A stretch of 64,000 nt of DNA from Phaeosaccion multiseriatum. Taxonomy: Eukaryota > Protista > Ochrophyta, other classes. Shown here one piece after another: positions 14,372 through 58,200 of the stretch (positions are counted from its first letter, which is position 1; each line of letters starts with the position of its first letter). Location: positions 2,604,001 to 2,668,000 of the forward strand of contig OZ218951.1 of the NCBI GenBank assembly GCA_965112735.1, given 5' to 3'. The notes beneath the pieces are model-generated. The model made no database searches and was not told where the DNA came from. It saw only the letters and a program-made list of their open reading frames with translations. The translations under genes were made by a program, and so were the position numbers.

Positions 14372-14414
<43 letters not shown>

Positions 14415-30080: not shown

Positions 30081-30389
30081 TCCCGCTATTCCTCCCTGTG
30101 GAAAGTCGATTCGTAAGTCATGGCCCAGGCCCAGGCAGATACGGTGAGAACGAGTGGCGTGGCTCTCACTATCCTATGTGCGTAGGTGGTCGTTTAGGAC
30201 TAGCATGCGATAAGTTAATAGAGGCAAGACTGGCTGCTAGGCTGGCTTTGGGGTTGCTGTTACCTTGTCCGTGTGTCTAGTTCTATCCTATCTGTAGGCG
30301 ACAGCGCATGTCGTTTTACACTATCTGTAGGCGACGGCGCTGGTCGTTTTACATCCCTCCCTACCTCCTTCTATCCCTCTACCCCTTCC

Positions 30390-34776: not shown

Positions 34777-37230
34777 TCAAACTGCATCGAATCTATCGGC
34801 ATTCTTGGTCTCCTCAGGCTGATGCACACTCTGCCACTGGAAAGATACTACTCCTCGGCGAGGGCTGTTTCCCTCTCGAACCACATGTCTCCTCGACCCC
34901 ACTCTGCCCTTGTTGCGAAGGGTTCGCTCTTCTGCCGGGGCTCCGCCGCTGTCCAGCTCCGTTCCGTGACGCGGCGCAGCGAGCGCTCGGGAGGACAAGA
35001 CGTGCTTTCTCAGCGGTATGCCCACCCACGCCACGTCTCCACGCTTTGAATTGGTGACACTTTCACCTCTCATGGCCATGCTCAGGTCACCAACGTTAGC
35101 TCCTGCTTCAACGCGGCATCCAGGCTGCAAGTGAGCCCTTGCTCCGAGCCACGCGTTCTCCTTGACTTGCACAGTCTTGAAGACGAACCCTCCCGTGCCT
35201 TCGATGGTGTGCGCGAAGATTGAAGAGTCTTGCAACACCACCGCTTCGTCTCCAATGACGAGAAGATGCGCATCATAAGCGAGCCTGAGCCATAAAGATG
35301 TGTCCTTGCCAACACTTGCCCCCAGCAGCCGCAGCCACGCCGCGTACACCGGCCCGCCCGCGAAGTACCTGATGCAGAGAGCCTCAATGAAGGCAGGGCC
35401 CATGCTGCCCAAGTCGTATATATCCCGCGAAAGCGAATCGAGCGCTACGGGAGGCTGCCCCTCTTTGGCAGGCAAGGATGTGCCCAGAACTCGATGGAGA
35501 AGAATAACTGAGCAAGCGCCCGCCAAGGCCATGAGAACTTGAAAGACGAAGCTCCCCAACACAAGAAAGAACACTCCAGTATGGCTCTCGCTCAGAGTAT
35601 CCCTCGCCACCACTTCTGGAAGGACGAAGGGACAGAAGGCGGCAGCACCATGCACATGGCCATTGCGCAGCAGCAGGTCAGATACCGACGCGCTGATCAA
35701 CACCCCCGGACACCACGCGCCGAGGAGCAGCACCACAGTCGCAAGCCCACACAGCGCATTGTGCATCCTCGACGGAACAGGAAGACTGGCTGCTGCATCG
35801 ACGCCATCCTTCTCAGCAGCAGCACTCACTGGGTTCGGCACCACAAACGGCCGAGGGGCGCCCACTACAGAAGAGTTGCACGGTACGTCGTCGTCTCCAC
35901 TCACAACGGTGCGATCTGCGACCGTGCTTCCGTCCCCAATGCAAGCTCCGCCTAGGAGAAGAGCTTCGTTCGCAACAATGCTGAAGCGGCCGATTGTGAT
36001 GCTTTGCGTATCCTCGTCTCCACGACCACCCGCATCAGCGAAAAGGTGCACAGAGCCCGCGAGCTGGGAGTTTTCCCCTATCCTGAGCTTCTCCCATATC
36101 GTAGTGATAGGAAGGGTAGAAAGTGCGCACCCCCGCTCCAGCCTGGCGCCCATGGCGGAAGCAAAAGCACGGTTGAGCCCACATCTTGCCACAAGAAGGA
36201 AGCCAGCCTTGAAGAGAGGACTCTCCTGAAGAACTCCGAGTGACAGCCGTGTGGTGGCGCTGGGGCCGAGCAGCAAGAATACACGCTGGATCGATAGCAC
36301 TGCCACCATGTACAGCATGCTTCCGATCAGCAGCAGCACGGGGAACGCCAATGTACGAGCGAAGATGGGGACACTCTCCCCCGCGCCGTCGTCATCACCC
36401 CCACCGGCAAGCACAAGTATCCAGAGGGGCAGCAGGTACGACCCCAAGTTGGTCACTGAAAGCAGGGCCAAGGCAAAAAGCTCTTTTCCTGCCCGCCGCA
36501 GCTCCTGCTCGCGTTCGACCTCTGCCAGCGGGCCAGAAAGTAGCGAATGGCCGAGCGACGCGTACGGACCGAGCTCCATCCCCTCGCCGATGACCAAGTC
36601 CTTTAGCTCCTCATCCAGGCCCTCCTCCCCCTCCTGCGTCTGCCCCCCCTCCCAGGGAGACGGACACACGTTGGACAGTATGCCCACCTTTGCTCCCTTC
36701 CCGATCCTCACGCGATGGACATGGAGCATGCCATTCCGAGTAATGACAGACGGGCGAATGACGGCTCCGTACTCGATCACGGCCCCTTCTCCAATCTCGA
36801 TCAAGTCATGCTCGTGCAGCAGCCAGCTCTCTAAGCGCGCGCTTCCACTGATTCGTGCCCCCAGCAGGCGGTTCCACACCCGCAAGGCGAAGGTACCACG
36901 GAGAACAGAAATCAGCGGTGCGGCAAGTTTCAGCACATTCTGCACAGCATACCACCGCCAGTAGTACGAGCTCCTCACGGACCATCGCCCCGGTCGCATG
37001 CGGCCAAGCACAGTCCACTTCACCACTGCAATCAGGGCAAGGACCCAGCTTAGTGACACGACGACGAGGAGTGGTAGCCAAGAAAGAATCGTCGTGTTGC
37101 CGCGCCCTGCTCTACGTAGCAAGTACACGCCAACGAAGCTGGGAGAAAACCCGCAGCTGAGCACAGCAACAACGAGCAGCCAACTCAGAACCTGCAGCAC
37201 CACTTGCTTGCCAGTGCTGAGCCTCCGGTG
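34777..37230 (-). other. Membrane-embedded terminal domain: three repeats of (TM pair + RxLGAx[IV]G hexapeptide beta-helix); Pls / TIGR02353-type
   Basis: [38 protein letters not shown]...[21 protein letters not shown]...LRIGENSQL...[21 protein letters not shown]...[10 protein letters not shown]...FAHTIE...WVGIP, separated by hydrophobic helices. Confidence 0.85.
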
Positions 37231-40200
37231 CGCTTTCGTCGCTTCCCCTTCTTCACCGACTGACTCGAAATCGCGCTCCTCGTCCTTCACTCGGGCTTCG
37301 CTTGCTGCCGACGACTCTTGTCCGCTGTCTCCTCTACCTCCGCCCTCCTCCGCGGCACCAAGCACTGAAAGTGCCACAGCGGTTCGGTTCTGGAAGATCT
37401 GCATTACTGTCAGAGCCTGCAGGAGTCACACAGACACAACAGGGTCAGCAACAAGGGCGAGACACAACACGACGAAAGCTTTGTGCTCAAAGTCACTCAC
37501 CTCGAAGCCGGGAACCTCTGCCCGGATACGCGAAACCGCCTGAGCCGCACTCAACGATGTTCCCCCCTCTGCGAACAAGTCGTCATTGGCCTGCAAGTGA
37601 GGCTGCTCCGTGGCCTGCCTCAGGATGCCCAGCACTTGGCGGGCAGTGTCGCCTAACGCCTCATCACCATCGGACGCCTTTACAGCGGTTTTGTTTCCCT
37701 TCGCTTCCGCCTTGATCATCCTCAGCACCTCTTTCACGTCTCTCTTCCCACTGCTCGTCATCGGTAGAGCATCCACGGCCACAGCCGTGCTCGGCACCAT
37801 GTATGACGGTAGCAGCCTGCTCACTCCTTGCAGCACCATCTCAACTTCGGCACTAGAAGGTGTCAGAGCCGCCACAACCGTCTCGCGCTCTCTGTCCACG
37901 GCTGCCACAGCGCTCCTCACACCCTCTTGATGGAGCAGCGCAGCCTCCACCTCGCCCAGCTCAATGCGATAGCCGCGCACCTTCACTTGAGAGTCTCGGC
38001 GACCGCTAAACACCAGCGATCCGTCTGCCAGCTGCCGCACCAAGTCACCCTGTCAGAACGTGTTCAGTTTGAGACGCGTCAGATCAGAACACTACAGCAT
38101 AGGCAGCAGAGAAACCTACCTCCACCCCACCCTGCGCTCTGCTTGTCACTGCAAGACATGCCAAAAGCAAGCCAAATGTACACACAACACACGCACACAC
38201 ACAAAGCCGCATACCCATGGGCAACCTTTTCGACTTACCGTACGATACACCCTGCGCTGGTCCGCCAGGAAGGGCGCGGGGATGAAGGCCTTCGACGTGA
38301 GCTCTGGGCGATTCAAGTATCCACGCGCCAGCTGTCTCCCCCCAATGCACAGCTCGCCCTCCACGCCCTGAGGCACCAGCTGCAGACGCTTGTCCACCAC
38401 ATACACTTGCACGCCGGCTCGAGGCTTGCCGATGACGGACGCACTCGACAGAGCCCTAGAGGAGTACTCATGTGCGATCACGGCAATAGTTGCCTCGGTT
38501 GGGCCGTAGCTATTGACAAGGCGCACACGGTGCCTCCACATGTCCACTTGGTCTTGCTTTATCGGTTCCCCACCCAAAGCGATCGACCGTAGGGTGGCCT
38601 CCTGCGCCCCTGTGGCGATGTCGTGCGGCCGAAGCAGCGACAGCAGTGAAGGGGTGCAATCAATGTCCGTCACCTTCAAAGATCGTATCAGCTCCGGCAG
38701 GTCATTCAGCATGGAGCCCTTCTCTGCCAAGCACAGCGTCGCCCCACACGACAACGTCCCGAACAGCAGCTCCACAGACGCATCAAATGTCAGAGCAGCA
38801 CTCAGGAGCACACGAGAAGATGCCGTTATCGTCAGTTCGAATTCGTAGAGCGTCGCCAGGAAGTTGGCCGTGCTTCTGTGCTCAATCATCACGCCCTTTG
38901 GCCGGCCGGTACTACCGGATGTGTAGATCACGTACGCCATGCTCTCGCCCACCGCGTGGCACACAGGCTCCGCGGTACCCTCCACTTGCATCACAGCCAC
39001 CACGTCCACACAGCTCGCGTCTCCGACACGCCGCGCTAAGCTGGCATCGGCGGATGCCAGCACCTCAGACTCGCCTGCTGCCTTTGCCGTCGTCAGAACG
39101 ACGCTCAGCCCGGCATCCTGTGCGATCATCGACAGCCTATCGTCGGGATGCTCGGGATCCAGGGGCACGTACGCCGCCCCGGCCTTGAGCACGCCCAGCA
39201 CTGCCACAACCGCCTCCACGCAGTCCCCAGCAATCAGCACCCCCACCAGGCACTCCGGCCCCACGCCCCTCCCCTGCAGCATGCATGCCACCGCATTCGC
39301 ATGCCCATTGAGCTCCCCGTAGCTCATCACCCGACCCGTCTCATACTCGTGCAGGGCTTCCTGCTCCGGACTGCGAGAGGCCACCTCTTCGAAAGCCGCG
39401 TGCAGGAGGGGTGGCGGTGGCGATGCTTCCTCTGCACCTCCCTGCTCGTCTCCATTGGCATCCCCCGCCACCAGTGCAGCGCCGCTCAACGTCTCCACCA
39501 CCTTCACACGGTCTTCGTGGGCCAAGAGATTCAGCTTCCACACGCTCTCGCCCGGCCTGCCCACTGCACTCTCCAGCAGCGCCAGGAAGCTCCGCGCCAG
39601 GGTCTCCACTGTGGCCTGGTCGAAGACCGCCGTATCGTAGCACAGGCTGCCGTGCATGTCCGACGCACTGTCCGTGCTGCGCACAAGGCTTAGCTCGATG
39701 TCAGTCTGGCTAAGATTAATGGCCTGCTGCTGTCCAGCCTCCTCCGTCATGATCTTGTGGAGTGCTCCAGCTGACAGCTGGGCCTCCTCCTCCACGGCGC
39801 TGGCATTTCCCTCCTGCAGTACAAAGAAGGCCTGCAGTGCCTTGCCACCACTCTTTCTGCCCAGCTGGGCCCGCTCCACCACCTTGTGGAACGGTGCCTC
39901 GGCATGCTTCATGGCACCCAGATACGCGACCTGTACGCGAAGCAGCACCTCCCCAAAGCTGGGGCTTCCTCCCAGGCCCAGACGGAACGCGAGGGTATTG
40001 ACGAAGCATCCCAGCACTCCTTCCAAGCCTTGCGCCACGTCTCTTCCGAAGTGCGCAGTGCCCACCACCACATCCTCCGCTCCGCACACACGAGCCAGCA
40101 GCACTTGGAACGCGCCCATGAGCCCCACAAACAGCGTGACGGAGCTGCTCGAGCATAGGTTGCTCAGCTTCACTATCAGCGAAGCCGGCAGAACAACAGC

Positions 40201-43200
40201 GACACTCCCGCCGCGCCCCCCCACAATCCCATCTTGACCTACAGTCTCCGTCAGATGCGGGCCGAAAGCACCGTGCGGTCGGTCGAGGGGCAGGGTCAGT
40301 GAAGGCGCCCCCGTTAGCTGCCCCTGCCAGTACTCCAACAGCTGCTCCAGGGCCAGGCCGTTGTCCCCGTCCAGTCGCGACCGCTGCCACCGGGAGTAGT
40401 CCGCATACCCAAACGGCAGAGCCGCTAGCGCCTTCGTCGCCTCTCGGCCAGACACGACAGCCCCCCACAGGACCAACAGCTCGCGCGAGAACAGCTTGGA
40501 TGACCACCCATCCATGATGGAGTGGTGGAAGACACACAGCACCGCTTGCCACCCCAGCGGGTGCTCCTTCTCATCATCCTGGGGCGGTGAAACGGTGACG
40601 ATGGTGCTGCGCCAGAGTGGCCTTTCCTCCTCCAAGTCAAACAGACGCCCCGCCTCTGCCAATAGCACGCTCTCGGCCTCTTCGTTGCTGTTCGCCTCGG
40701 CGGACAGGAGCACTGACGCCACAACCTCCGCTGCTGTGGTCTGCAGCCGCACCTGCTGCAGCGTCCCCTCCGGTGACCAGCTTAGCGCCAATCGCAGAAC
40801 ATCGTGACGCTCCACCATGGCGCACAGGGCACGGGACAAGCCGTCCACAACCTCGCTGGGCTCTCTCTCCGATTCGGAGCTGGGCATGGGCAGAAGCATG
40901 GGCACGTTGTATCGCGCCCTCCCGTCTGGGTCGCCCGCTCGCAGCACCACGTCCGACAGCAGCATGTGCTCCTGTTGGTACGACGCTGGAGCCTCACGAT
41001 GGTCGCCAACTCGCGATATCACCATCATACCAGGAAGCGTGTCCTCCCTGCTCGCACATAAGCGAGACACACCCCTCGCGGTGGGTGTCTGGAACATCTC
41101 TGCCACCTGGAGCGCCTGAGTACAGCAACGAGTAAAGATATCCGACGGTCCACAACTATATTAGCAAACCATTTGGAACTACCGGCCACACCAGAAAGAC
41201 AGCCCTCCATCCCACTCACCTCGAAGCCTGGCACCTCTGCGCGAATGCGTGCTGTGACACTTGCAGCGTCAAGCGAAGTGCCTCCCTCGGCGAACAAGTC
41301 GCCGCTGGCTCGCAGATCCGGTCGCCCAACAGCCTCTCGCATAATGCCGAGCACTTGACGGGTGGTGTCGTCCATAGGTGCGTCATCGCTGACGCCTAGG
41401 CTCCGCTGCCTGCCACGGCCATGGTCATGTGCCTCTCGAATGGCTCTAAGAACCTCTGTCACGTCTCGCTTCCCGCTGCTTGTCATCGGTAGAGCATCCA
41501 TGGCCACAGCCGTGCTCGGCACCATGTATGCCGGTAGCAGCTTGCTCACTCCTTGCAGTACCATATCAACTTCGGCACTAGAAGGTGTCAGAGCCGCCAC
41601 AACCGTCTCGCGCTCTCTGTCCACGGCTGCCACAGCGCTCCTCACACCCTCTTGATGGAGCAGGGCAGCCTCCACCTCGCCCAACTCAATGCGATGGCCG
41701 CGCACCTTCACTTGGGAGTCTCGGCGACCCCTAAACACCAGCGATCCGTCTGCCAGCTGCCGCACCAAGTCGCCCTGTCAGAACATAGTATGTTTTGAGT
41801 CGCGTCAGATCAGAACAGTGCACAGGGCGGGCAGCAGAGAGAACTACCTCCACCCCCCCCCCTTGCGCTCTCTTCTTGTCACTGCATGGCATGCTAAAAG
41901 CAAGCCAAATGTACACACAATACACGCACACACACAAAGCCGCACACCCATGGGCAACCTTTTCAACTTACCGTACGATACACCCTTCGCTGGTCCGTCA
42001 GGAAGGGCGCGGGGATGAAGGCCTTCGACGTGAGCTCTGGGCGATTCAAGTACCCACGCGCCAGCTGTCTCCCCCCAATGCACAGCTCGCCCTCCACGCC
42101 CTGAGGCACCAGCTGCAGACGCTTGTCCACCACATACACTTGCACGCCGGCTCGAGGCTTGCCGATAACGGACGCGCTCGGCACGGCAGACGGTGTGTAC
42201 TCGTGCCAGGTTACTACCACCGCCGTCTCTGTGGGTCCATAAATATTGCCCAGTCGCACTCGGTGTTTCCAGTAATCGACCTGCTCTTGACGTAAGGCCT
42301 CTCCCCCAAGCGCGATGGACCGAAGACTCGGGAAACCCACTTCCCCACCATGAGGCTGTGGGAGCAAAGACAGTAGTGACGGAGTGCACACCAAGAACGA
42401 TACCCCAAGCGAGCGCACAGCCTCTGGCAACTCGCTCAACATGGAGAGCTTTTGCACCAGGCACAGCGTCGCCCCGCATGACAGAGCCCCGAAGATCAAC
42501 GCCACTGACATATCGAAAGTCAAAGCGCTGCTCTGCAAAACCCGTGACGAAGGGTCTATGGTGCCCAACATTGTTTCGTAGATCGTCGCCATGAAGCCGG
42601 CCGCGTTTCTATGCTCGACCACCACACCTTTCGGTCGCCCGGTGCTTCCAGACGTGTATATCACATACGCCACATTGATGTCGACGGCCTTACACTCCAC
42701 CTCAGAGACTGTCGTAGCAGCCCCCTCGAGCTGCATCATGGTCCTCACATCCACACAGCTCGCGCCTGCGACGGTGCGAGCCGACCTACCGCCTGTGGGG
42801 AGGCCTTGCTCCACATGGTCCGCCCCAGTCGCTGCCGTGAGAACGACACTCAGCCCGGCGTCTTCTGCGATCATCGACAGCCTTTCGTCGGAATGCTCGG
42901 GATCCAGGGGCACGTACGCCGCCCCCGCCTTGAGCACGCCCAGCACTGCCACAACCGCCTCCACGCAGTCCCCAGCAATCAGCACCCCCACCAGGCACTC
43001 CGGCCCCACGCCCCTCCCCAGCAGCATGCACGCCACCGTATTCGCATGCCCATTCAGCTCCCCGTAGCTCATCACTCGATCTGTCTCATACTCGTGCAGG
43101 GCTTCCTGCTCCGGACTACGAGAGGCCATCTCTTCGAAAGCCGTGTGCAGGAGGGGCGGCGGTGGCGATGCTTCCTCTGCACCTCCCTCCTCGTCTCCAT

Positions 43201-46200
43201 TGGCATCCTCCGCCACCCGTGCAGCGCCGCTCAGCGTCTCCACCACCTTCACACGGTCCTCGTGTGCCAAGAGACTCAGCTTCCACACGCTCTCGCCCGG
43301 CCTGCCCACTGCACTCTCCAGCAGCGCCAGGAAGCTCCGCGCCAGGGTCTCCACTGTGGCCTGGTCGAATACCGCCGTATTGTAGCACAGGCTGCCGTGC
43401 ATGTCCGACGCACTGTCCGTGCTGCGGCGCACAAGGCTTAGCTCGATGTCAGTCTTGCTAAGATTATTGGCCTGCTGCTCTCCAGCCCCCTCCGTCATGA
43501 TCTTGTGGAGTGCTCCAGCTGACAGCTGGGCCTCCTCCTCCACGGCGCTGGCATTTCCCTCCTGCAGTACAAAGAAGGCCTGCAGTGCCTTGCCACCACT
43601 CTTTCTTCCCAGCTGGGCCCGCTCCGCCACCTTGTGGAACGGTGCCTCGGCATGCTTCATGGCACCCAGATACGCGACTTGTACGCGAAGCAGCACCTCC
43701 CGAAAGCTGGGGCTTCCTCCCAGGCCCAGACGGAACGCGAGGGTATTGACGAAGCATCCCAGCACGCCCTCCAAGCCTTGCGCCACGTCTCTTCCGAAGT
43801 GCGCAGTGCCCACCACCACATCCTCCGCTCCGCACACACGAGCCAGCAGCACTTGGAACGCGCCCATGAGCCCCACAAACAGCGTGGCGGAGCTGCTCGA
43901 GCATAGGTTGCTCAGCTTCACTATCAGCGAAGCCGGCAGAACAACAGCGACACTCCCGCCGCGCCCCCCCACAATCCCATCTTGACCTACGGTCTCCGTC
44001 AGATGCGGGCCGAAAGCACCGTGGGGTCGGTCGAGGGGCAGGGTCAGTGAAGACGCCCCCGTTAGCTGCCCCTGCCAGTACTCCAACAGCTGCTCCAGGG
44101 CCAGGCCGTTGTCCCCGTCCAGTCGCGACCGCTGCCACCGGGAGTAGTCCGCATACCCAAACGGCAGAGCCGCTAGCGCCTTCGTCGCCTCTCGGCCAGA
44201 CACGACAGCCCCCCACAGGACCAACAGCTCGCGCGAGAACAGCTTGGATGACCACCCATCCATGATGGAGTGGTGGAAGACACACAGCACCGCTTGCCGC
44301 CCCAGCGGGTGCTCCTTCTCACCATCCTGGGGCGGTGAAACGGTGACGATGGTGCTGCGCCAGAGTGGCCTTTCCTCCTCCAAGTCAAACAGGCGCCCCG
44401 CCTCTGCCAATAGCACGCTCTCGGTCTCTTCGATGCTGTTCGCCTCGGCGGACAGGAGCACTGACGCCACAACCTCCGCTGCTGTGGTCTGCAGCCGCAC
44501 CTGCTGCAGCGTCCCCTCCGGTGACCAGCCTAGCGCCAATCGCAGAACATCGTGACGCTCCACCATGGCGCACAGGGCACGGGACAAGCCGTCCACAACC
44601 TCGCTGGGCTCTCTCTCCGATTCGGAGCTGGGCACGGGTAGAAGCATGGGTACGTTGTATCGCGCCCTCCCGTCTGGGTCGCCCGCTCGCAGCGCCAGGT
44701 CCGACAGCAGCATGTGCTCCTGTTGGTACGACGCTGGAGCCTCACGATGGTCGCCAACTCGCGATATCACCATCATACCAGGAAGCGTGTCCTCCCTGCT
44801 CGCACATAAGCGAGACACACCCCTCGCGGTGGGTGTCTGGAACATCTCTGCCACCTGGAGCGCCTGAGTACAGCAACGAGTAAGGACATCCTATATTAGC
44901 AAACCATTTGGAACTACCGGCCACACCAGAAAGACAGCCCTCCATCCCACTCACCTCGAAGCCTGGCACCTCTGCGCGGATGCGTGCTGTGACACTTGCA
45001 GCGTCAAGCGAAGTGCCTCCCTCGGCGAACAAGTCGTCGCTGGATCGCAGATCCGGTCGCCCAACAGCCTCTCGCATAATGCCGAGCACTTGACGGGTGG
45101 TGTCGTCCAGAGGTCCGTCATCGCTGACGCCTAGGCTCCGCTGCCTGCCAGGACTATCATGATGTGTCGCTCGGATGGCTCTGAGAACCTCTTTCGCGTC
45201 TCGCTTCCCGCTGCTCGTCATCGGCAGAGCATCCACGGCCACAGCCTTGCTCGGCACCATGTATGCCGGTAGCAGCTTGCTCACTCCTTGCAGCACCATC
45301 TCCACGTCGGCACTAGAAGGTGTCAGAGCTGCCACAACCGTCTCGCTGTCTCTGTCCACGGCTGCCACAGCGCTCCTCACACCCTCTTGATGGAGCAGCG
45401 CAGCCTCCACCTCGCCCAGCTCAATGCGATAGCCGCGCACCTTCACTTGAGAGTCTCGGCGACCCCTAAACACCAGCGATCCGTCTGCCAGCTGCCGCAC
45501 CAAGTCGCCCTGTCAGAACGTAGTATGTTTTGAGTCGCGTCAGATCAGAACAGTGCAGTAAGGAGCAGAGAGAACTACCTCCATCCCCCCCCCCCCCTGC
45601 GCTCTCTTCTTTTCACCGCATGACAGGCCAAAAGCAAGCCAAATGTACACACAACACACGCACACACACAAAGCCGCACACCCATGGGCCACTTTTTCGA
45701 CTTACCGTACGATACACTCTGCGCTGATCCGTCAGGAAGGGCGCGGGGATGAAGGCCTTCGACGTGAGCTCTGGGCGATTCAAGTACCCACGGGCCAGCT
45801 GTCTCCCCCCAATGCACAGCTCGCCCTCCACGCCCTGAGGCACCAGCTGCAGACGCTTGTCCACCACATACACTTGCACGCCGGCTCGAGGCTTGCCGAT
45901 GACGAACCCACTCGACATGGCACCCTGACTGTACTTGTGCGTCGTCACGGCATTCGTTTCGGTTGGGCCGTAGCTATTGACAAGGCGAACACTGCGCCTC
46001 CACATGTCCACTTGGCCTTCCTTGATCGGCTCCCCAATCAATGCGATGGACCGTAAGGTGGCCTCCTTAGCTCCATTGGTGATGTCTTGCGGTCGAAGCA
46101 GCGACAGCAGTGACGGGGTGCAGTACATGTCTGTTACCCTCAAAGACTGTATCACCTCCGGCAGGTCGTTCAGCATGGAGCCCTTCGCTGCCAAGCAAAG

Positions 46201-49200
46201 CGTCGCCCCACACGACAACGGCCCAAACAGCGACGCCACAGACACATCAAATGTCAAAGCAGCACTCAGGAGCACACGAGAAGATGCCGTTATGGTCAGT
46301 TCCTCTTCGTAGAGAGTCGCCATGAAGCTGGCCGTGCTTCTGTGCTCAATCATCACGCCCTTTGGCCGGCCCGTACTACCGGACGTGTGAATCACGTACG
46401 CCATGCTCTCGCCCACGGCGTGGCACACAGGCTCCGCTGTACTCTCCACTTGCATCACAGCCACCACGTCCACACAGCTCGCGTCTCCGACACGACGCGC
46501 TAAGCTGGCATCGGCGGTTGCCAGCACCTCAGACTCGCCTACTGCCTTTGCCGTCGTCAGAACGACGCTCAGCCCCGCGTCTTGTGCGATCATCGACAGC
46601 CTATCGTCGGGATGCTCGGGATCCAGGGGCACGTACGCCGCCCCCGCCTTGAGCACGCCCAGCACTGCCACAACCGCCTCCACGCAGTCCCCAGCAATCA
46701 GCACCCCCACCAGGCACTCCGGCCCCACGCCCCTCCCCTGCAGCATGCACGCCACCGCATTCGCATGCCCATTGAGCTCCCCGTAGCTCATCACTCGATC
46801 TGTCTCATACTCGTGCAGGGCTTCCTGCTCCGGACTGCGAGAGGCCACCTCTTCGAAAGCCGTGTGCAGGAGGGGCGGCGGTGGCGATGCTTCCTCTGCA
46901 CCTCCCTCCTCGTCTCCATTGGCATCCTCCGCCACCAGTGCAGCGCCGCTCAGCGTCTCCACCACCTTCACACGGTCCTCGTGTGCCAAGAGACTCAGCT
47001 TCCACACGCTCTCGCCCGGCCTGCCCACTGCACTCTCCAGCAGCGCCAGGAAGCTCCGCGCCAGGGTCTCCACTGTGGCCTGGTCGAGCACCGCCGTATT
47101 GTAGCACAGGCTGCCGTGCATGTCCGACGCACTGTCCGTGCTGCGGCGCACAAGGCTTAGCTCGATGTCAGTCTTGCTAAGATTATTGGCCTGCTGCTCT
47201 CCAGCCCCCTCCGTCATGATCTTGTGGAGTGCTCCAGCTGACAGCTGGGCCTCCTCCTCCACGGCGCTGGCATTTCCCTCCTGCAGTAAAAAGAAGGCCT
47301 GCAGTGCCTTGCCACCACTCTTTCTTCCCAGCTGGGCCCGCTCCACCACCTTGTGGAACGGTGCCTCGGCATGCTTCATGGCACCCAAATACGCGCCCTG
47401 TACGCGAAGCAGCACCTCCCGAAAGCTGGGGCTTCCTCCCAGGCCCAGACGGAACGCGAGGGTGTTGACGAAGCATCCCAGCACTCCTTCCAAGCCTTGC
47501 GCCACGTCTCTTCCGAAGTGCGCAGTGCCCACCACCACATCCTCCGCTCCGCACACACGAGCCAGCAGCACTTGGAACGCGCCCATGAGCCCCACAAACA
47601 GCGTGGCGGAGCTGCTCGAGCATAGCTTGCTCAGCTTCACTATCAGCGAAGCCGGCAGAACAACAGCGACACTCCCGCCGCGCCCCCCCACAATCCCATC
47701 TTGACCTACAGTCTCCGTCAGATGCGGACCGAAAGCACCGTGGGGTCGGTCGAGGGGCAGGGTCAGTGAAGACGCCCCCGTTAGCTGCCCCTGCCAGTAC
47801 TCCAACAGCTGCTCCAGGGCCAGGCCGTTGTCCCCGTCCAGTCGCGACCGCTGCCACCGGGAGTAGTCCGCATACCCAAACGGCAGAGCCGCTAGCGCCT
47901 TCGTCGCCTCTCGGCCAGACACGACAGCCCCCCACAGGACCAACAGCTCGCGCGAGAACAGCTTGGATGACCACCCATCCATGATGGAGTGGTGGAAGAC
48001 ACACAGCACCGCTTGCCGCCCCAGCGGGGGCTCCTTCTCACCATCCTGGGGCGGTGCAACGGTGACGATGGTGCTGCGCCAGAGTGGCCTTTCCTCCTCC
48101 AAGTCAAACAGGCGCCCCGCCTCTGCCAATAGCACGCTCTCGGTCTCTTCGATGCTGTTCGCCTCGGCGGACAGGAGCACTGACGCCACAACCTCCGCTG
48201 CTGTGGTCTGCAGCCGCACCTGCTGCAGCGTCCCCTCCGGTGACCAGCCTAGCGCCAATCGCAGAACATCGTGACGCTCCACCATGGCGCACAGGGCACG
48301 GGACAAGCCGTCCACAACCTCGCTGGGCTCTCTCTCCGATTCGGAGCTGGGCACGGGTAGAAGCATGGGTACGTTGTATCGCGCCCTCCCGTCTGGGTCG
48401 CCCGCTCGCAGCGCCAGGTCCGACAGCAGCATGTGCTCCTGTTGGTACGACGCTGGAGCCTCACGATGGTCGCCAACTCGCGATATCACCATCATACCAG
48501 GAAGCGTGTCCTCCCTGCTCGCACATAAGCGAGACACACCCCTCGCGGTGGGTGTCTGGAACATCTCTGCCACCTGGAGCGCCTGAGTACAGCAACGAGT
48601 AAGGACATCCTATATTAGCAAACCATTTGGAACTACCGGCCACACCAGAAAGACAGCCCTCCATCCCACTCACCTCGAAGCCTGGCACCTCTGCGCGAAT
48701 GCGTGCTGTGACACTTGCAGCGTCAAGCGAAGTGCCTCCCTCGGCGAACAAGTCGTCGCTGGATCGCAGATCCGGTCGCCCAACAGCCTCTCGCATAATG
48801 CCGAGCACTTGACGGGTGGTGTCGTCCAGAGGTCCGTCATCGCTGACGCCTAGGCTCCGCTGCCTGCCAGGACTATCATGATGTGTCGCTCGGATGGCTC
48901 TGAGAACCTCTTTCGCGTCTCGCTTCCCGCTGCTCGTCATCGGCAGAGCATCCACGGCCACAGCCTTGCTCGGCACCATGTATGCCGGTAGCAGCTTGCT
49001 CACTCCTTGCAGCACCATCTCCACGTCGGCACTAGAAGGTGTCAGAGCTGCCACAACCGTCTCGCTGTCTCTGTCCACGGCTGCCACAGCGCTCCTCACA
49101 CCCTCTTGATGGAGCAGCGCAGCCTCCACCTCGCCCAGCTCAATGCGATAGCCGCGCACCTTCACTTGAGAGTCTCGGCGACCCCTAAACACCAGCGATC

Positions 49201-52200
49201 CGTCTGCCAGCTGCCGCACCAAGTCGCCCTGTCAGAACGTAGTATGTTTTGAGTCGCGTCAGATCAGAACAGTGCAGTAAGGAGCAGAGAGAACTACCTC
49301 CATCCCCCCCCCCCCCTGCGCTCTCTTCTTTTCACCGCATGACAGGCCAAAAGCAAGCCAAATGTACACACAACACACGCACACACACAAAGCCGCACAC
49401 CCATGGGCCACTTTTTCGACTTACCGTACGATACACTCTGCGCTGATCCGTCAGGAAGGGCGCGGGGATGAAGGCCTTCGACGTGAGCTCTGGGCGATTC
49501 AAGTACCCACGGGCCAGCTGTCTCCCCCCAATGCACAGCTCGCCCTCCACGCCCTGAGGCACCAGCTGCAGACGCTTGTCCACCACATACACTTGCACGC
49601 CGGCTCGAGGCTTGCCGATGACGAACCCACTCGACATGGCACCCTGACTGTACTTGTGCGTCGTCACGGCATTCGTTTCGGTTGGGCCGTAGCTATTGAC
49701 AAGGCGAACACTGCGCCTCCACATGTCCACTTGGCCTTCCTTGATCGGCTCCCCAATCAATGCGATGGACCGTAACGTGGCATCCTTAGCACCATTGGTG
49801 ATGTCTTGCGGTCGAAGCAGCGACAGCAGTGACGGGGTGCAGTACATGTCTGTTACCCTCAAAGACTGTATCACCTCCGGCAGGTCGTTCAGCATGGAGC
49901 CCTTCGCTGCCAAGCAAAGCGTCGCCCCACACGACAACGGCCCAAACAGCGACGCCACAGACACATCAAAGGTCAAAGCAGCACTCAGGAGCACACGAGA
50001 AGATGCCGTTATGGTCAGTTCCTCTTCATAGAGAGTCGCCATGAAGCTGGCCGTGCTTCTGTGCTCAATCATCACGCCCTTTGGCCGGCCCGTACTACCG
50101 GACGTGTGAATCACGTACGCCATGCTCTCGCCCACGGCGTGGCACACAGGCTCCGCTGTACTCTCCACTTGCATCACAGCCACCACGTCCACACAGCTCG
50201 CGTCTCCGACACGACGCGCTAAGCTGGCATCGGCGGTTGCCAGCACCTCAGACTCGCCTACTGCCTTTGCCGTCGTCAGAACGACGCTCAGCCCCGCGTC
50301 TTGTGCGATCATCGACAGCCTATCGTCGGGATGCTCGGGATCCAGGGGCACGTACGCCGCCCCCGCCTTGAGCACGCCCAGCACTGCCACAACCGCCTCC
50401 ACGCAGTCCCCAGCAATCAGCACCCCCACCAGGCACTCCGGCCCCACGCCCCTCCCCAGCAGCATGCATGCCACCGCATTCGCATGCCCATTGAGCTCCC
50501 CGTAGCTCATCACTCGATCTGTCTCATACTCGTGCAGGGCTTCCTGCTCCGGACTGCGAGAGGCCATCTCTTCGAAAGCCGCGTGCAGGAGGGGCGGCGG
50601 TGGCGATGCTTCCTCCGCACCTCCCTCCTCGTCTCCATTGGCATCCTCCGCCACCAGTGCAGCGCCGCTCAACGTCTCCACCACCTTCACACGGTCCTCG
50701 TGTGCCAAGAGACTCAGCTTCCACACGCTCTCGCCCGGCCTGCCCACTGCACTCTCCAGCAGCGCCAGGAAGCTCCGCGCCAGGGTCTCCACTGTGGCCT
50801 GGTCGAGCACCGCCGTATTGTAGCACAGGCTGCCGTGCATGTCCGACGCACTGTCCGTGCTGCGGCGCACAAGGCTTAGCTCGATGTCAGTCTTGCTAAG
50901 ATTATTGGCCTGCTGCTCTCCAGCCCCCTCCGTCATGATCTTGTAGAGTGCTCCAACTGACAGCTGGGCCTCCTCCTCCACGGCGCTGGCATTTCCCTCC
51001 TGCAGTAAAAAGAAGGCCTGCAGTGCCTTGCCACCACTCTTTCTGCCCAGCTGGGCCCGCTCCACCACCTTGTGGAACGGTGCCTCGGCATGCTTCATGG
51101 CACCCAAATACGCGCCCTGTACGCGAAGCAGCACCTCCCGAAAGCTGGGGCTTCCTCCCAGGCCCAGACGGAACGCGAGGGTGTTGACGAAGCATCCCAG
51201 CACTCCTTCCAAGCCTTGCGCCATGTCTCTTCCGAAGTGCGCAGTGCCCACCACCACATCCTCCGCTCCGCACACACGAGCCAGCAGCACTTGGAACGCG
51301 CCCATGAGCCCCACAAACAGCGTGGCGGAGCTGCTCGAGCATAGCTTGCTCAGCTTCACTATCAGCGAAGCCGGCAGAACAACAGCGACACTCCCGCCGC
51401 GCCCCCCCACAATCCCATCTTGACCTACAGTCTCCGTCAGATGCGGGCCGAAAGCACCGTGCGGTCGGTCGAGGGGCAGGGTCAGTGAAGACGCCCCCGT
51501 TAGCTGCCCCTGCCAGTACTCCAACAGCTGCTCCAGGGCCAGGCCGTTGTCCCCGTCCAGTCGCGACCGCTGCCACCGGGAGTAGTCCGCATACCCAAAC
51601 GGCAGAGCCGCTAGCGCCTTCGTCGCCTCTCGGCCAGACACGACAGCCCCCCACAGGACCAACAGCTCGCGCGAGAACAGCTTGGATGACCACCCATCCA
51701 TGATGGAGTGGTGGAAGACACACAGCACCGCTTGCCGCCCCAGCGGGGGCTCCTTCTCACCATCCTGGGGCGGTGCAACGGTGACGATGGTGCTGCGCCA
51801 GAGTGGCCTTTCCTCCTCCAAGTCAAACAGGCGCCCCGCCTCTGCCAATAGCACGCTCTCGGTCTCTTCGATGCTGTTCGCCTCGGCGGACAGGAGCACT
51901 GACGCCACAACCTCCGCTGCTGTGGTCTGCAGCCGCACCTGCTGCAGCGTCCCCTCCGGTGACCAGCCTAGCGCCAATCGCAGAACATCGTGACGCTCCA
52001 CCATGGCGCACAGGGCACGGGACAAGCCGTCCACAACCTCGCTGGGCTCTCTCTCCGATTCGGAGCTGGGCACGGGTAGAAGCATGGGTACGTTGTATCG
52101 CGCCCTCCCGTCTGGGTCGCCCGCTCGCAGCGCCAGGTCCGACAGCAGCATGTGCTCCTGTTGGTACGACGCTGGAGCCTCACGATGGTCGCCAACTCGC

Positions 52201-55200
52201 GATATCACCATCATACCAGGAAGCGTGTCCTCCCTGCTCGCACATAAGCGAGACACACCCCTCGCGGTGGGTGTCTGGAACATCTCTGCCACCTGCAGCG
52301 CCTGAGTACAGCAACGAGTAAGGATATCCGACGGTCCACAACTATATTAGCAATACCATTTGGAACTACCCGCCACACCACAAAGGCAACCCTCCATCCC
52401 ACTCACCTCGAAGCCTGGCACCTCTGCGCGGATGCGTGCTGTGACACTTGCAGCGTCAAGCGAAGTGCCTCCCTCGGCGAACAAGTCGCCGCTGGCTCGC
52501 AGATCCGGTCGCCCAATGGCCTCTCGCATAATGCCGAGCACTTGACGGGTGGTGTCGTCCATAGGTGCGTCATCGCTGACGCCTAGGCTCCGCTGCCTGC
52601 CACGGCCATGGTCATGTGCCTCTCGAATGGCTCTAAGAACCTCTGTCACGTCTCGCTTCCCGCTGCTTGTCATCGGTAGAGCATCCATGGCCACAGCCGT
52701 GCTCGGCACCATGTATGCCGGTAGCAGCTTGCTCACTCCTTGCAGTACCATATCAACTTCGGCACTAGAAGGTGTCAGAGCCGCCACAACCGTCTCGCGC
52801 TCTCTGTCCACGGCTGCCACAGCGCTCCTCACACCCTCTTGATGGAGCAGCGCAGCCTCCACCTCGCCCAGCTCAATGCGATGGCCGCGCACCTTCACTT
52901 GGGAGTCTCGGCGACCCCTAAACACCAGCGATCCGTCTGCCAGCTGCCGCACCAAGTCGCCCTGTCAGAACATAGTATGTTTTGAGTCGCGTCAGATCAG
53001 AACAGTGCACAGGGCGGGCAGCAGAGAGAACTACCTCCACCCCCCCCCCTTGCGCTCTCTTCTTGTCACTGCATGGCATGCTAAAAGCAAGCCAAATGTA
53101 CACACAATACACGCACACACACAAAGCCGCACACCCATGGGCAACCTTTTCAACTTACCGTACGATACACCCTTCGCTGGTCCGTCAGGAAGGGCGCGGG
53201 GATGAAGGCCTTCGACGTGAGCTCTGGGCGATTCAAGTACCCACGCGCCAGCTGTCTCCCCCCAATGCACAGCTCGCCCTCCACGCCCTGAGGCACCAGC
53301 TGCAGACGCTTGTCCACCACATACACTTGCACGCCGGCTCGAGGCTTGCCGATAACGGACGCGCTCGGCACGGCAGACGGTGTGTACTCGTGCCAGGTTA
53401 CTACCACCGCCGTCTCTGTGGGTCCATAAATATTGCCCAGTCGCACTCGGTGTTTCCAGTAATCGACCTGCTCTTGACGTAAGGCCTCTCCCCCAAGCGC
53501 GATGGACCGAAGACTCGGGAAACCCACTTCCCCACCATGAGGCTGTGGGAGCAAAGACAGTAGTGACGGAGTGCACACCAAGAACGATACCCCAAGCGAG
53601 CGCACAGCCTCTGGCAACTCGCTCAACATGGAGAGCTTTTGCACCAGGCACAGCGTCGCCCCGCATGACAGAGCCCCGAAGATCAACGCCACCGACATAT
53701 CGAAAGTCAAAGCGCTGCTCTGCAAAACCCGTGACGAAGGGTCTATGGTGCCCAACATTGTTTCGTAGATCGTCGCCATGAAGCTGGCCGCGTTTCTATG
53801 CTCGACCACCACACCCTTCGGTCGCCCGGTGCTCCCAGACGTGTATATCACATACGCCACATTGATATCGACGGCCTTACACTCCACCTCAGAGCCGATC
53901 GTAGCCGCCCCCTCGAGCTGCATCGTGGTTCTCACATCCACACAGCTCGCGTCTCCGACGGTGCGAGCCGACCTTCCGCCTGTGGGGAGGCCTTGTTCCA
54001 CATGGTCCGCCCCAGTTGCTGCTGTGAGAACGACGTTGAGCCCGGCGTCTTGTGCGATCATCGATAGCCTATCGTCGGGATGCTCGGGATCCAGGGGCAC
54101 GTACGCCGCCCCCGCCTTGAGCACGCCCAGCACTGCCACAACCGCCTCCACGCAGTCCCCAGCAATCAGCACCCCCACCAGGCACTCCGGCCCCACGCCC
54201 CTCCCCTGCAGCATGCACGCCACCGCATTCGCATGGCCATTCAGCTCCCCGTAGCTCATCACTCGATCTGTCTCATACTCGTGCAGGGCTTCCTGCTCCG
54301 GACTGCGAGAGGCCATCTCTTCGAAAGCCGCGTGCAGGAGGGGCGGCGGTGGCGATGCTTCCTCCGCACCTCCCTCCTCGTCTCCATTGGCATCCTCCGC
54401 CACCAGTGCAGCGCCGCTCAACGTCTCCACCACCTTCACACGGTCCTCGTGTGCCAAGAGACTCAGCTTCCACACGCTCTCGCCCGGCCTGCCCACCGCA
54501 CTCTCCAGCAGCGCCAGGAAGCTCCGCGCCAGGGTCTCCACTGTGGCCTGGTCGAGCACCGCCGTATTGTAGCACAGGCTGCCGTGCATGTCCGACGCAC
54601 TGTCCGTGCTGCGCACAAGGCTTAGCTCGATGTCAGTCGTATTATTCTTCCAAGTGTCCACACCCGCCTCCTGATTCTTCAAAATATCCAAACCCGCCTC
54701 CTGCAGTACAAAGAAGGCCTGCAGTGCCTTGCCACCAGCATCTCTGCCCAGCTGGGCCCGCTCCACCACCTTGTGGAACGGTGCCTCGGCATGCTTCATG
54801 GCACCCAGGTACGCGACCTGTACGCGAAGCAGCACCTCCCGAAAGCTGGGGCTTCCTCCCAGGCCCAAACGGAACGCGAGGGTGTTGACGAAGCATCCCA
54901 GCACGCCCTCCAAGCCTTGCGCCATGTCTCTTCCGAAGTGCGCAGTGCCCACCACCACATCCTCCGCTCCGCACACACGAGCCAGCAGCACTTGGAACGC
55001 GCCCATGAGCCCCACAAACAGCGTGGCGGAGCTATCCGCGCACAGTTTACTCAACTTGACCACCACTGCATTGGGTAGCACCAAGTTCACCCTCCCACTT
55101 CCTCCCACACTGATGATATCTCCATGCACCATTTCTCCACTGAGGCCCTTTTGGGCATGTCGCTGATGGAGAGGCAGCTGCAGTGGACTGGTACCAGCCA

Positions 55201-58200
55201 GTTGACCCTGCCAGTATTCAAGCAGCTCCTCAATACGACCTTCGCCGTCCAGCCGAGCTCGTTGCCACCTGGAGTAGTCCGCGAAGCTGAAGGGCAGAGC
55301 CGGTAGGTCTTGTGCAATGCCTCTCCCCGCCATGGCAGCTGCGCATGTGGCCTTGAACTCGCCCTGGAAGAGCAAGTAGGATGCACCATCAAAGATGCAA
55401 TGATGGAAAGTAGATACCGCGGCATACTGCTCCTCCACTCCGCTCTGCTGCGGGAGGTGTACGACCAACGTACGCCATAGAGGCTGGCTCCGCTCCAAAT
55501 CGAATGTACGAGCGATATCGGCCTCGATCAGGCTCCGAGCCGCCCCAACACTGCTGGCCACGGCAGAAGAGAGACAAGCTGACACCACCGCGGCTGCCGT
55601 AGTTCCAAGCTGTACCTGCCTCAGAGAGCCCTGCTTTGTCCACTCAAGCGCCGTCCGGAGCACGTCATGTCGCTCCACTATGCTGCCTAACACTTGTGCT
55701 ATCATGTCCACAATTTCAGCGGATGTTCGTCCGGAGATCAGCGCGACTGGCAGCGGCAGCACCACTGGGAGATTGTACGCGCTCTGCCCGCCAGGGGCAA
55801 TCGTCCGCAGTGCTACGTCCGAAAGGTACATGTGCTCCTGCTGGTAAGCCGCGGGGGCGTCAGCATCCAAGGAGTAGTGCGAAAGACCTGTTGCTTGATC
55901 ATCAGGCTCACTCAGCGGCCCCGAGTCCGCTCCCAGAACTTCCTCTTCGATCCATGAAGCCATTGCAGACACTGATGGATACGTAAAGAAGGCGCCGCTC
56001 GACATGGTGACACCACACCAGGCCTCGATTCGCTTGCCAAACTCCACGGCCGCCATTGAATCGAGCCCGGCTTCCATCAAGGGCATCGCTGCTGCCAAGG
56101 TGAAGTCCTCGCCAACGCACTCGACTGCCATGTCCGTCAGGACTTGCTCGATCCTCTCCCGCCGTGCTGACTCCGGCAAGAGCAGGAGCTCATCCCGCAC
56201 CTCGGCATTGACGCTGTAGCACTTTGTCGCCTCACCACTTTCTCCGCGGTCCGTCAACTGCCCGAGGAAATCGCTGAGCACAGGGTCCAAGCTCGCTCGA
56301 AATCTGCCCCACCTCATGGCCGGCATGACGGCCACCTCCTGCACGTTGGCTTGCATTTGACTTGCAAGGACGGCTTCCAGAGCCTTCATACCCAGCGCCG
56401 ATGAGATCAGGCCCACTCCGGCCATCTCCGCAGCTTTCGACACCATTTCAAGCCGCACCGCCATACCTACGTCGCCCCATGGGCCCCACTGAACGTTGGA
56501 AGCAGGAAGGCCAAGCTGGCGTCGGCGGTAGCGCATCAGCCCGTCCAAAGCAGCGTTGGCCCCGGCATAGGCGCTCTGATTGGACAAGCCAAGCAAAGCG
56601 GAGGTCGATGAGTACGAGGCGAAGAAGTCGATCTCCTCCCTGCCGCTCGCCGCCCACTCAAGGCACAGCGCGTGGAGATTCCAACCTCCCTGGACCTTGG
56701 CGGCAAAGACATTTCGCACGTTCTCTTCCGTCTCGCCCGACAACATCCTCTTTGCGCCATTCACCCCCGCTGCGTGGATCACACCCCGAACATGAGGCAG
56801 CTCCACCAAGGCCGTTGCCACAGTATCTCGAAGCTGATGCATGTCGGACACATCGCAGGCCACGGCCACAGCGGTGACACTCTCCATGCTCTGCAGGGCC
56901 TGCCACAGCCCTGAAACTTCCTCCGCCGCCCGGCCGCTTCGAGATAGTAGGAGCAGGTATCGGGCACCCTGGGAGACCAAGTGATTCGCCGTCACTAGCC
57001 CCAGCCCCCCCAGACCACCGCTGATCAGGTAGGTCCCATCCTCTCTGCACTTGAAGCGATCGACTCCTACCGGCGTCAGATGGAGTGTGCTGGGCACCAG
57101 CCTCGGAGCGAGAATCTCACTCCCTCGAACCAGCAGGTCCACGCCTCGGCCGCCGTCGCGGGCTCCTGCAGCCACCGTCACAGCCTGGGAGATAGCTTGG
57201 GCTTCCATGTTCTCTACTCTAGGTCGTGCATCCTCAGACTGTGGATACATGGCATACTCAAGGTCGATGTGGTTCACATCGAGGTCGCCCCGCTCCAGGC
57301 GTACGCTTCTCACCAGTCCCACTGCCCAGCTGTCCTGCCAACCCGCACCGCTGTACACGCCCGTTGTCACCACCGTGATCGGCATCACTGCCGCGTCCCC
57401 GTCTAAGCTGTGTACAGTTTGCACAAAGTGGATTGCCCCATCGGTAGCAGAGCCCGTTGCTGACGTCAAGTAGAAGAGATGGGCCCCACGGGGCTGCGCG
57501 TCTGAACCGACCGCCTCCACCACGTGCACCTCTACACCACTTGCTGTCGCCGCGCTTCGGACAGCTTCCAAGGCTCTGTGGTTGTTCGAAGCGTGCTGCT
57601 CTTCAGCTGCCTGGGGAATCACGACGAGCCACGGAAGGCGGCCGGTCAGCGAAGCCTGCTGCGAAGCCGTGGGCACCTCCACCGCCTCCCACTCAACAAC
57701 ATAGAGCGGGCCCTGCTCAGCTTCACTCCGCGGCTGAGGTGCTGCTGTGGCTCGCGCTGTGTACCAAGGAAAGGCTTTGCGCGTTGGGAACAGGATGTGC
57801 TCCTCGCCCTTACTCTCTGGCTGCTGCACTGTGCTCAGAGCTGCTCGAAACGACTCCTCGGAGCTCTTCCCGCGCGTGAGAGAAGGGATCCACACCAGCC
57901 CCTCGCGACGCTCGCACTTGGCTCCCATGCTGCTCAGCACAGGGTGGGGGCCCACCTCAACGATGCTCAGGTCAGCCCCCCTCCCGTCTCCCATCCAGTG
58001 CTCCACCACCGTGTGGATGCCTTCTGCGAACAGCACTGGCGACAGCATGTGTTGCACCCAATACGTCGCCTGCGTCACCTCCTCCTCTCTCACCACCTCA
58101 CCCGTCAAGTTGGATACCAGGGGGATGCGTGGGGCGCTCAATGATACCTGCCTCAGAACCTCCTCCAGCGCACGTACAGCGGGCTCCATCAGAGGAGAGT

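Follow-up and report, generated by a model that had tools for sequence, protein, structure and literature searches.

The DNA analysed in this work is a 64,000-nucleotide stretch of the genome of the ochrophyte Phaeosaccion multiseriatum (assembly GCA_965112735.1, contig OZ218951.1, positions 2,604,001 to 2,668,000 of the forward strand), called the window below; all coordinates refer to it. Its minus strand carries the 3' end of an intact eukaryotic gene for a hybrid of a polyketide synthase (PKS) and a nonribosomal peptide synthetase (NRPS). The encoded enzyme is a eukaryotic PKS-NRPS that terminates in a divergent domain of the Pls/PosA superfamily and whose last module has become lysine-type by convergence. 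After the removal of 11 GT-AG introns, a single open reading frame (ORF) of 9171 amino acids (aa) with one terminal stop is obtained, and it is on account of this stop-free frame that the gene is regarded as intact and eukaryotic. The frame runs past position 64000, the N-terminus lies outside the window, and the gene encodes at least 9171 aa. By analogy with the chemistry of the Pls/PosA family, we give about an even chance to the proposal that the terminal domain transfers the finished chain once to an acceptor at the membrane, releasing a cationic lipopeptide. The initial annotation had described the segment 34777-39400 as an intact Pls-like unit for a basic amino acid and had proposed a polyketide-peptide-primed polycation as its product; two spliceosomal introns located inside this segment (38238-38050 and 37500-37417) were absent from that description.

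Domain Order of the Assembly Line

Searches with Pfam and NCBIfam models gave the order ..KS-AT-KR-ACP-KS-AT-KR-ACP-(C-A-T)x5, followed by a terminal domain of ~740 aa (KS, ketosynthase; AT, acyltransferase; KR, ketoreductase; ACP, acyl carrier protein; C, condensation; A, adenylation; T, carrier). This is the composition of a hybrid type I PKS-NRPS, in which KS-AT-KR-ACP modules precede C-A-T modules, and both the core motifs of the A domains and the carrier serines are present. The HHxxxDG motif occurs in all five C domains, reading HHCIFDG in C1 and HHSIMDG in C5. The N-terminal half of C1 shares only 25-60% identity with those of C2-C5 (53159-56000 compared with 41972-44863), a divergence that would fit a condensation domain taking a polyketide from an ACP and not from a peptidyl donor. 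No canonical release domain (thioesterase, TE; reductase, R; or terminal C) was matched by Pfam or NCBIfam after T5, and for this reason the terminal domain, which follows T5 directly, is the only candidate for release.

When the PKS exon was searched for homologues, only bacterial modular PKSs were matched, at 30-45% identity over the longer alignments, a result that has no bearing on the taxon. Bacterial hybrid type I PKS-NRPSs of the cyanobacterial, myxobacterial and mycobacterial types contain the same kinds of modules with all the core motifs. Unlike them, the Phaeosaccion gene has spliceosomal introns and near-identical tandem NRPS modules, and where a TE, R or terminal C domain would stand, its product has a hexapeptide-repeat domain embedded in the membrane.

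The Terminal Domain

The terminal domain is uninterrupted by introns and is encoded by the last exon, which specifies 879 aa. Its parts, delimited by Kyte-Doolittle hydropathy and an AF2 model, are as follows (TM, transmembrane).

37021..37203, minus strand: TM hairpin 1 (TM1-TM2), from hydropathy and long helices in the AF2 model
36481..37020, minus strand: soluble segment C1 (~180 aa) with beta-helix-like strands, from the best TIGR02353 stretch, hydropathy and AF2
36295..36480, minus strand: TM hairpin 2 (TM3-TM4), from hydropathy and AF2
35767..36294, minus strand: soluble segment C2 (~176 aa), with weak matches to hexapeptide-repeat acetyltransferases
35518..35766, minus strand: TM hairpin 3 (TM5-TM6), from hydropathy and AF2
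34987..35517, minus strand: soluble segment C3 (~177 aa), with a Pfam Hexapep match and the codon of the superfamily-invariant His at 35211-35209
34777..34986, minus strand: basic C-terminal tail (~69 aa), predicted to be disordered (pLDDT about 30), with the stop codon at 34779-34777

By hydropathy, the TM pairs occupy residues 72-132, 313-374 and 551-633 of the last exon and enclose or precede soluble segments of 180, 176 and 177 aa. The AF2 model, built with 70 homologues (pLDDT 69, pTM 0.74), has the same layout. Pls-type domains were described as ~730-aa units with six TM helices in three pairs and three segments of ~180 aa (PMC10522769), and this six-TM, three-segment layout is fully present here. 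A carrier domain followed by a six-TM domain of ~730 aa is also found in Pls of Streptomyces albulus and in its eukaryotic homologues from Epichloe, Planoprotostelium and Nematostella. PosA of Acinetobacter baumannii has a terminal domain of the same superfamily, modelled as three beta-helices on a six-helix bundle (PMC10522769).

The family model TIGR02353 matched the last exon with E=1.3e-40 and 139.5 bits, below its cut-off of 423.1, while Pfam Hexapep scored 42.2 bits against a cut-off of 27. Additionally, NCBIfam gave weak matches to O- and N-acetyltransferases in segments C2 and C3. A Foldseek comparison with the PDB returned only single hexapeptide acyltransferases, among them serine and maltose acetyltransferases (probability 0.99-1.0, E about 5e-3), and a PDB sequence search gave marginal hexapeptide acetyltransferase matches only; neither search of the PDB returned a solved Pls-type domain. 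Taken from sequence and predicted structure, these results support the assignment of the terminal domain to the Pls/PosA superfamily, with complete anatomy.

Relatives and Phylogenetic Position

A word-indexed search with the terminal domain returned only proteins of ~1300 aa composed of an A, a T and the terminal domain, the best at 105 bits. An exhaustive search yielded 1153 representatives at E<=1e-3, and all the terminal-domain homologues are Pls/PosA-type proteins. Since even the best of these matches reaches only 144 bits and 31% local identity, no orthologue is on record. The ORF of the last exon was also looked up by exact sequence in public assemblies, with no match. The closest collinear relative is P0127, a protein of the eukaryotic alga Chrysoparadoxa australica (CAM9397790.1), which gave a single alignment over residues 74-804 at 29% identity. 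Its order is ER-KR-ACP-C-A-T followed by the terminal domain (ER, enoylreductase), so that, as in the Phaeosaccion protein, a PKS part precedes a final C-A-T module. P0127 differs in its last A domain, whose code DAMMEGAVAK lacks E239, and in having one visible NRPS module; it is uncharacterised, and its gene model is cut near a contig end. The P0127 gene (L001:2077-9588, CAXMZZ020000274.1) starts about 2 kb from that end with an N-terminal ER domain, and a larger PKS-NRPS has probably been truncated here to its 3' part.

The architectures of other relatives vary. In P0219 (Stygiella), a PKS and an ACP precede the terminal domain; in P0148, two amine oxidase domains and two carrier domains do. 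P0129 and P0256 are C-A-T proteins with the terminal domain, P0143 places a cNMP-binding domain before and an FMN dehydrogenase after an A-T-terminal-domain unit, and in proteins of Eucalyptus (P0235 and members of its cluster) such a unit lies between an amine oxidase and a catalase. In the literature, PMC10522769 was the only work retrieved when hybrids carrying a Pls/PosA-type terminal domain and newer structural studies were searched for; a search on the TIGR02353 family brought up plant PPR papers.

Trees of the terminal domain were built with FastTree (144 rows) and with IQ-TREE under LG+C20 (58 rows), and they separate two clades with SH-aLRT support of 100%. In the polymerase clade, essentially all A domains have D-x-E codes. 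The second clade contains varied architectures and mostly A domains that are not of the amino-acid type. The Phaeosaccion domain falls in the second clade in both trees, as sister to P0127 and P0148 (96% SH-aLRT). Forcing it into the polymerase clade costs 42 log-likelihood units, with p=0.02 in the approximately unbiased (AU) test, whose groups were named after the first tree had been seen. Most members of its clade have an A domain without D235 or none whatever; the many A domains that lack D235 are unlikely to load alpha-amino acids. Where an amino-acid-type A domain is present, an extra acidic pocket residue was found in three clade members out of three: E239 and D278 in Phaeosaccion, D278 in P0129 and E299 in P0127.

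Conserved residues gave a similar placement. Of the 48 columns whose conservation is confined to the polymerase clade, the Phaeosaccion domain retains 14, most of those in segment C2 being lost; of the 29 that both clades conserve it retains 18, the invariant His in C3 included. Among the 206 columns conserved in the first homologue set, 68 are kept. Thus, compared with Pls and PosA, this terminal domain belongs to a different clade, scores below the TIGR02353 cut-off and lacks most polymerase-specific residues.

The Pocket of the Fifth Adenylation Domain

Two methods were used to read the pocket codes of the five A domains: motif anchors on the spliced protein, checked against a HMMER alignment to LgrA, and a MAFFT alignment that included 197 A domains from proteins of the Pls/PosA family. 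Positions are numbered as in GrsA, with the register taken from LgrA and the family alignment and not from a residue-level alignment to GrsA (1AMU), which was match 13 for A5 in a PDB search (E=4e-58). Codes have been published for Pls, PosA and a beta-lysine enzyme (PMC10522769 Suppl. Table 2). The register is considered validated because the MAFFT alignment recovers them, as DAESIGTVVK for Pls (124 sequences), DMEHNGTVSK for PosA and DGESISVVNK for the beta-lysine enzyme.

Both methods returned DMAVAGIVVK for A1 and A4, DVAYAISAVK for A2 and A3, and DAEDAGSIAK for A5, identical to the codes of the initial annotation. Its statement that A5 has acidic residues at 239 and 278 proved correct as well, the register coming from an alignment that recovers known codes. 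None of the other four A domains has an acidic pocket residue beyond D235, and A5 is also the one beside the Pls-like domain, from which only T5 separates it, as had been claimed. The codons of the A5 pocket are listed below.

38784-38782, minus strand: D235
38781-38779, minus strand: A236
38772-38770, minus strand: E239
38661-38659, minus strand: D278
38580-38578, minus strand: A299
38574-38572, minus strand: G301
38511-38509, minus strand: S322
38487-38485, minus strand: I330
38484-38482, minus strand: A331

A5 follows the pocket rule of polymer synthetases, with D as the first and E as the third residue of the code. The position-3 Glu is conserved in every known polymer synthetase; in crystal structures of PosA it binds the side-chain amine of the substrate, and the E221A mutant was inactive (PMC10522769). 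The same work reported that code position 2 follows the substrate's chain length, with Phe for diaminopropionate (Dap) or diaminobutyrate (Dab), Met for ornithine and Ala for lysine, and that the PosA mutant M218A shifted toward lysine (PMC10522769). A5 shares the position-3 Glu with PosA and differs from it in having Ala at position 2, where the ornithine-type PosA code has Met. With Pls it shares D235, A236, E239, G301 and K517, and S322 is found in the eukaryotic homologues, so that six of ten positions match their Lys-type code DAESIGSVVK (D235, A236, E239, G301, S322 and K517). Position 4 is D in A5 and S in Pls. The nearest code in the comparison set was DLEDVGSIAK, which shares eight of ten positions with A5 and whose subgroup was listed as uncharacterised (PMC10522769). 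A literature search for the exact code strings gave one irrelevant match only. This code gives good support to a cationic substrate of A5, for which L-lysine is the most probable candidate and ornithine or arginine would be alternatives.

Origin of Module 5

The NRPS part consists of five tandem paralogous modules. Between modules 2 and 3 the identity is 99.4% and extends to synonymous sites; module 5 shares 90-91% identity and the same intron positions with them. Modules 5 and 3 differ mainly in two places, the pocket subdomain and T5 plus linker, the identity elsewhere being 92-100%, and synonymous differences are raised in the same windows as amino acid differences. From this coincidence it follows that the module flanks were homogenised while the pocket region escaped. 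The pattern extends over the series as a mosaic of concerted evolution: identity is 92-100% among C2 to C5 and among the A-domain flanks, and only the pocket subdomains and T5 with its linker have diverged (41116-52961 and 38239-41115). The near-identical 3.7-kb repeats carry a risk of assembly collapse.

Code positions are over-represented among the differences between modules 5 and 3, with six of ten changed compared with 104 of 1140 overall (Fisher p=8e-5); inside the pocket subdomain, six of nine differ compared with 34 of 198 (p=1e-3). We read this enrichment as a mark of selection on the A5 pocket. That T5 and its linker diverged as well would be in line with a carrier working with another partner downstream.

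In the PDB search, A5 matched LgrA at 1e-100 and the A domain of Pls at only 2.7e-33, and it is thus of another lineage than the A domain of Pls. The possibility that A5-T5 and the terminal domain had entered the gene jointly, as one Pls unit, was ruled out by module identity, shared introns and this PDB ranking. As A5-T5 is a paralogue of modules 2 and 3, its Pls-like pocket represents the convergent re-tuning of an ordinary elongation module. The intact Pls-like unit of the initial annotation therefore holds for the cationic pocket and for the complete Pls/PosA-superfamily anatomy, and does not hold for A5-T5, which is LgrA-like and stands behind an intact C5.

Proposed Mechanism and Alternatives

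We propose that at least two PKS modules with KR as their only reductive domain would make a hydroxylated acyl chain, to which the five C-A-T modules would add X-Y-Y-X-Z, where Z is a cationic amino acid. The full polyketide-pentapeptide chain would end on T5, which should carry the whole of it because C5 looks active (HHSIMDG). The membrane-embedded terminal domain, predicted to consist of three TM hairpins carrying three left-handed beta-helix segments, would then off-load the chain: a nucleophile at the membrane, an amine if the analogy applies, would accept the acyl group from the T5 thioester, and the product would be a cationic lipopeptide. In the chemistry of the family, a free amine attacks the carrier-bound thioester, and in Pls specifically the thioester is the donor and the amine of the free chain is the acceptor (PMC10522769). 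Because of this direction, a lipopeptide would cap an oligolysine and not prime it; the priming role assigned to it in the initial annotation is contradicted. Clade relatives in which the terminal domain is fused to loaders of non-polymerising substrates support a general off-loading role, as far as their architectures can be read.

Several points weigh against the proposed single transfer. The Phaeosaccion branch in the tree is long (2.05), and the AU groups were defined post hoc. Superfamily-core residues are changed (E715D, D717H, K640L, R420S and T688G), and because of such changes the activity could be altered or lost. The off-loading acyl transfer is drawn by analogy from the architecture, and the members of the clade are all uncharacterised. 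Likewise, the substrate of A5 is deduced from its code, and that of the group with the nearest code is uncharacterised. Finally, an independently acquired D-A-E pocket beside the terminal domain would be expected if the side-chain amine joined the terminal reaction, which favours the first two of the alternatives below.

The first alternative has as its product an oligo(iso)lysine that the lipopeptide caps. In the intervals between lipopeptide cycles, free lysines would be joined through their side-chain amines in repeated, Pls-like rounds of A5-T5 and the terminal domain, and in the last step the polyketide-tetrapeptidyl-Lys thioester would be transferred onto the amine end of the oligomer. 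A5 has the D-A-E signature of Lys-polymer synthetases and lies directly upstream of a complete Pls-type domain; its pocket arose independently in a module of the 2/3 type and persisted despite homogenisation, and Pls chemistry would let a free amine acceptor attack any T-bound thioester. However, Pls is a single A-T-terminal-domain protein of about 1300 aa without a C domain, and PosA departs from the Phaeosaccion line in the same way, with one module and no C domain, whereas here the domain closes a PKS-NRPS of >9171 aa. With C5 intact, lysine on T5 would also be a substrate for ordinary elongation. The position of the terminal domain outside the polymerase clade, the small share of polymerase-specific residues kept, with most of those in C2 lost, and the TIGR02353 score far below its cut-off all oppose repeated transfer, as do clade relatives that load substrates unable to polymerise via a side chain. 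We therefore consider this alternative unlikely, and the polycation of the initial annotation retains the D-A-E pocket in its favour while its polymerising terminal domain is not borne out by clade or residues. Its fuller form, in which one module is used in two ways, for an isopeptide oligolysine and for a polyketide-tetrapeptidyl-lysine cap, the A5 pocket being a convergent adaptation to a polymerising terminal domain, seems quite unlikely. If true, one protein alone would make a natural lipidated polycation, and its terminal domain would be a polymerising member of a clade that is so far not known to polymerise.

The terminal domain might instead use the side-chain amine of the last residue itself, either closing a lactam on release or joining whole lipopeptide units head to side chain; oligomerisation of units through this amine had been the second suggestion of the initial annotation. 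The D-A-E code and the code-position enrichment of A5 would suit such a reaction, the side-chain amine of residue 5 would still be free after the C5 condensation, and all three amino-acid-type A domains of the clade have an extra acidic pocket residue. In published codes, however, a lone acidic residue at 278 or 299 is not specific for basic substrates, the reaction has no precedent in the family, and the clade consists mostly of proteins whose A domain lacks D235 or is absent. Such a self-reaction appears distinctly improbable.

Another view is that the terminal domain is a degenerate relic, acting mainly as a membrane anchor, with release by hydrolysis or by a separate enzyme. The incomplete retention of first-set and superfamily-core columns speaks for it, as do the conserved E-x-D before C3, which reads D-x-H, and the lack of any homologue above about 31% local identity. 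Low identity is also seen inside the active family, Pls and PosA being only about 20% identical in the terminal domain (PMC10522769). Moreover, an 879-aa open frame has been maintained, the six TM segments and three repeats are of normal length, the invariant His and most of the invariant Gly and Arg residues are kept, and the protein has no other release domain. We regard decay of the domain as very doubtful.

A frameshifted pseudogene or an assembly artefact of collapsed repeats is extremely unlikely: bacterial-style ORF calling does give ~14 pieces with stops and frame changes on the minus strand from 64000 to 34777, and the near-identity of modules 2 and 3 is an assembly risk, but each break starts with a GT(A/G)AGT or GTACGT donor and ends with a CAG acceptor, the same pair of codon positions is interrupted in each of the five modules, splicing restores one frame, and the neighbouring genes are eukaryotic. 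The pseudogene reading is thus ruled out, every break being a GT-AG intron. The single acyl transfer onto a membrane acceptor is the reading we prefer.

Gene Structure and Genomic Neighbourhood

Donors at the ORF breaks read GTAAGT, GTGAGT or GTACGT. In every NRPS module, intron 1 lies in motif A7 (between YRT and GDL) and intron 2 in the carrier domain (between PGFE and AL), and the intron sequences themselves are conserved between the five modules. These shared codon positions and conserved sequences indicate that the modules were duplicated after the introns had been gained. The remaining features of the gene are listed below in the direction of transcription.

59760..64000, minus strand: first exon in the window, with KS (C-terminal part)-AT-KR-ACP and the N-terminal part of the next KS (Pfam, exon model)
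59502..59759, minus strand: GT-AG intron of KS2, with an in-frame stop at 59702-59704 inside it
53159..59501, minus strand: exon with the rest of KS2, AT-KR-ACP, C1 and the A1 core (Pfam; HHCIFDG in C1, A1 code DMAVAGIVVK)
41116..53158, minus strand: rest of module 1 and modules 2 to 4, with two introns per module
53158-52962, 52406-52302, 49424-49229, 48673-48583, 45705-45510, 44954-44864, 41971-41775 and 41219-41116, minus strand: introns of modules 1 to 4
39409..41115, minus strand: end of T4 and C5 (Pfam Condensation, 174.9 bits; HHSIMDG at 40527-40507)
38239..39408, minus strand: A5 core, motifs A1 to A7 (Pfam, LgrA alignment, motif anchors, family alignment)
38050..38238, minus strand: A7 intron of module 5, containing stops that split the ORFs
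37501..38049, minus strand: C-terminal subdomain of A5 and first part of T5 (Pfam AMP-binding_C and PP-binding; K517 at 37746-37744)
37557-37555, minus strand: carrier serine of T5 (GGTS)
37417..37500, minus strand: T5 intron
37204..37416, minus strand: end of T5 and an acidic linker

A codon is divided by the KS2 intron, whose predicted junction lies between SSDW and RCKTFD and whose splice site is less certain than those of the other introns. The KS motif at this junction usually has Gly, and the real splice site may differ slightly from the model. The A7 introns of modules 1 to 4 (52962-53158, 49229-49424, 45510-45705 and 41775-41971) have a run of ~10-13 G behind a GT-rich stretch; that of module 5 is shorter than the other copies and has no long G run.

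Neighbouring ORFs at 42-4025, 14345-15532 and 20851-22971 encode ankyrin repeats, tetratricopeptide (TPR) repeats and a PI3/PI4-kinase fragment. A homologue search with the PI4-kinase-like ORF gave three weak matches, the only named one from Ectocarpus siliculosus; with the algal origin of P0127, the closest relative of the terminal domain, this hints weakly at a stramenopile source. No obvious tailoring or transporter genes for a megasynthase were seen among the window ORFs scanned. Long microsatellites lie downstream of the gene, (CTCC)n of ~437 bp at 29642-30078 and (TCCC)n of ~685 bp at 30354-31038, together with many shorter purine/pyrimidine repeats between 28 and 34.7 kb. These repeats are responsible for an extreme strand skew and spurious ORFs at 30-32 kb. 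Because of its ankyrin, TPR and PI3/PI4-kinase-like ORFs and its long microsatellites, the flanking DNA fits a eukaryote.

Significance

The Pls/PosA terminal domain has been characterised in a single role, as the homopolymerising part of one-module enzymes. In the Phaeosaccion line, as in a few uncharacterised relatives, such a domain stands in for the release domain of large eukaryotic PKS, NRPS and hybrid lines. The gene also offers a natural experiment: its five near-identical modules show hardly any differences outside the pocket subdomain, and the last of them has acquired a pocket of the lysine-polymerase type. If the proposed off-loading is true, the terminal domain would represent a further, membrane-coupled strategy of chain release for assembly-line enzymes. 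A product that proved to be a cationic lipopeptide or a lipidated oligolysine would belong to a new class of algal or protist metabolites that is likely to be membrane-active.

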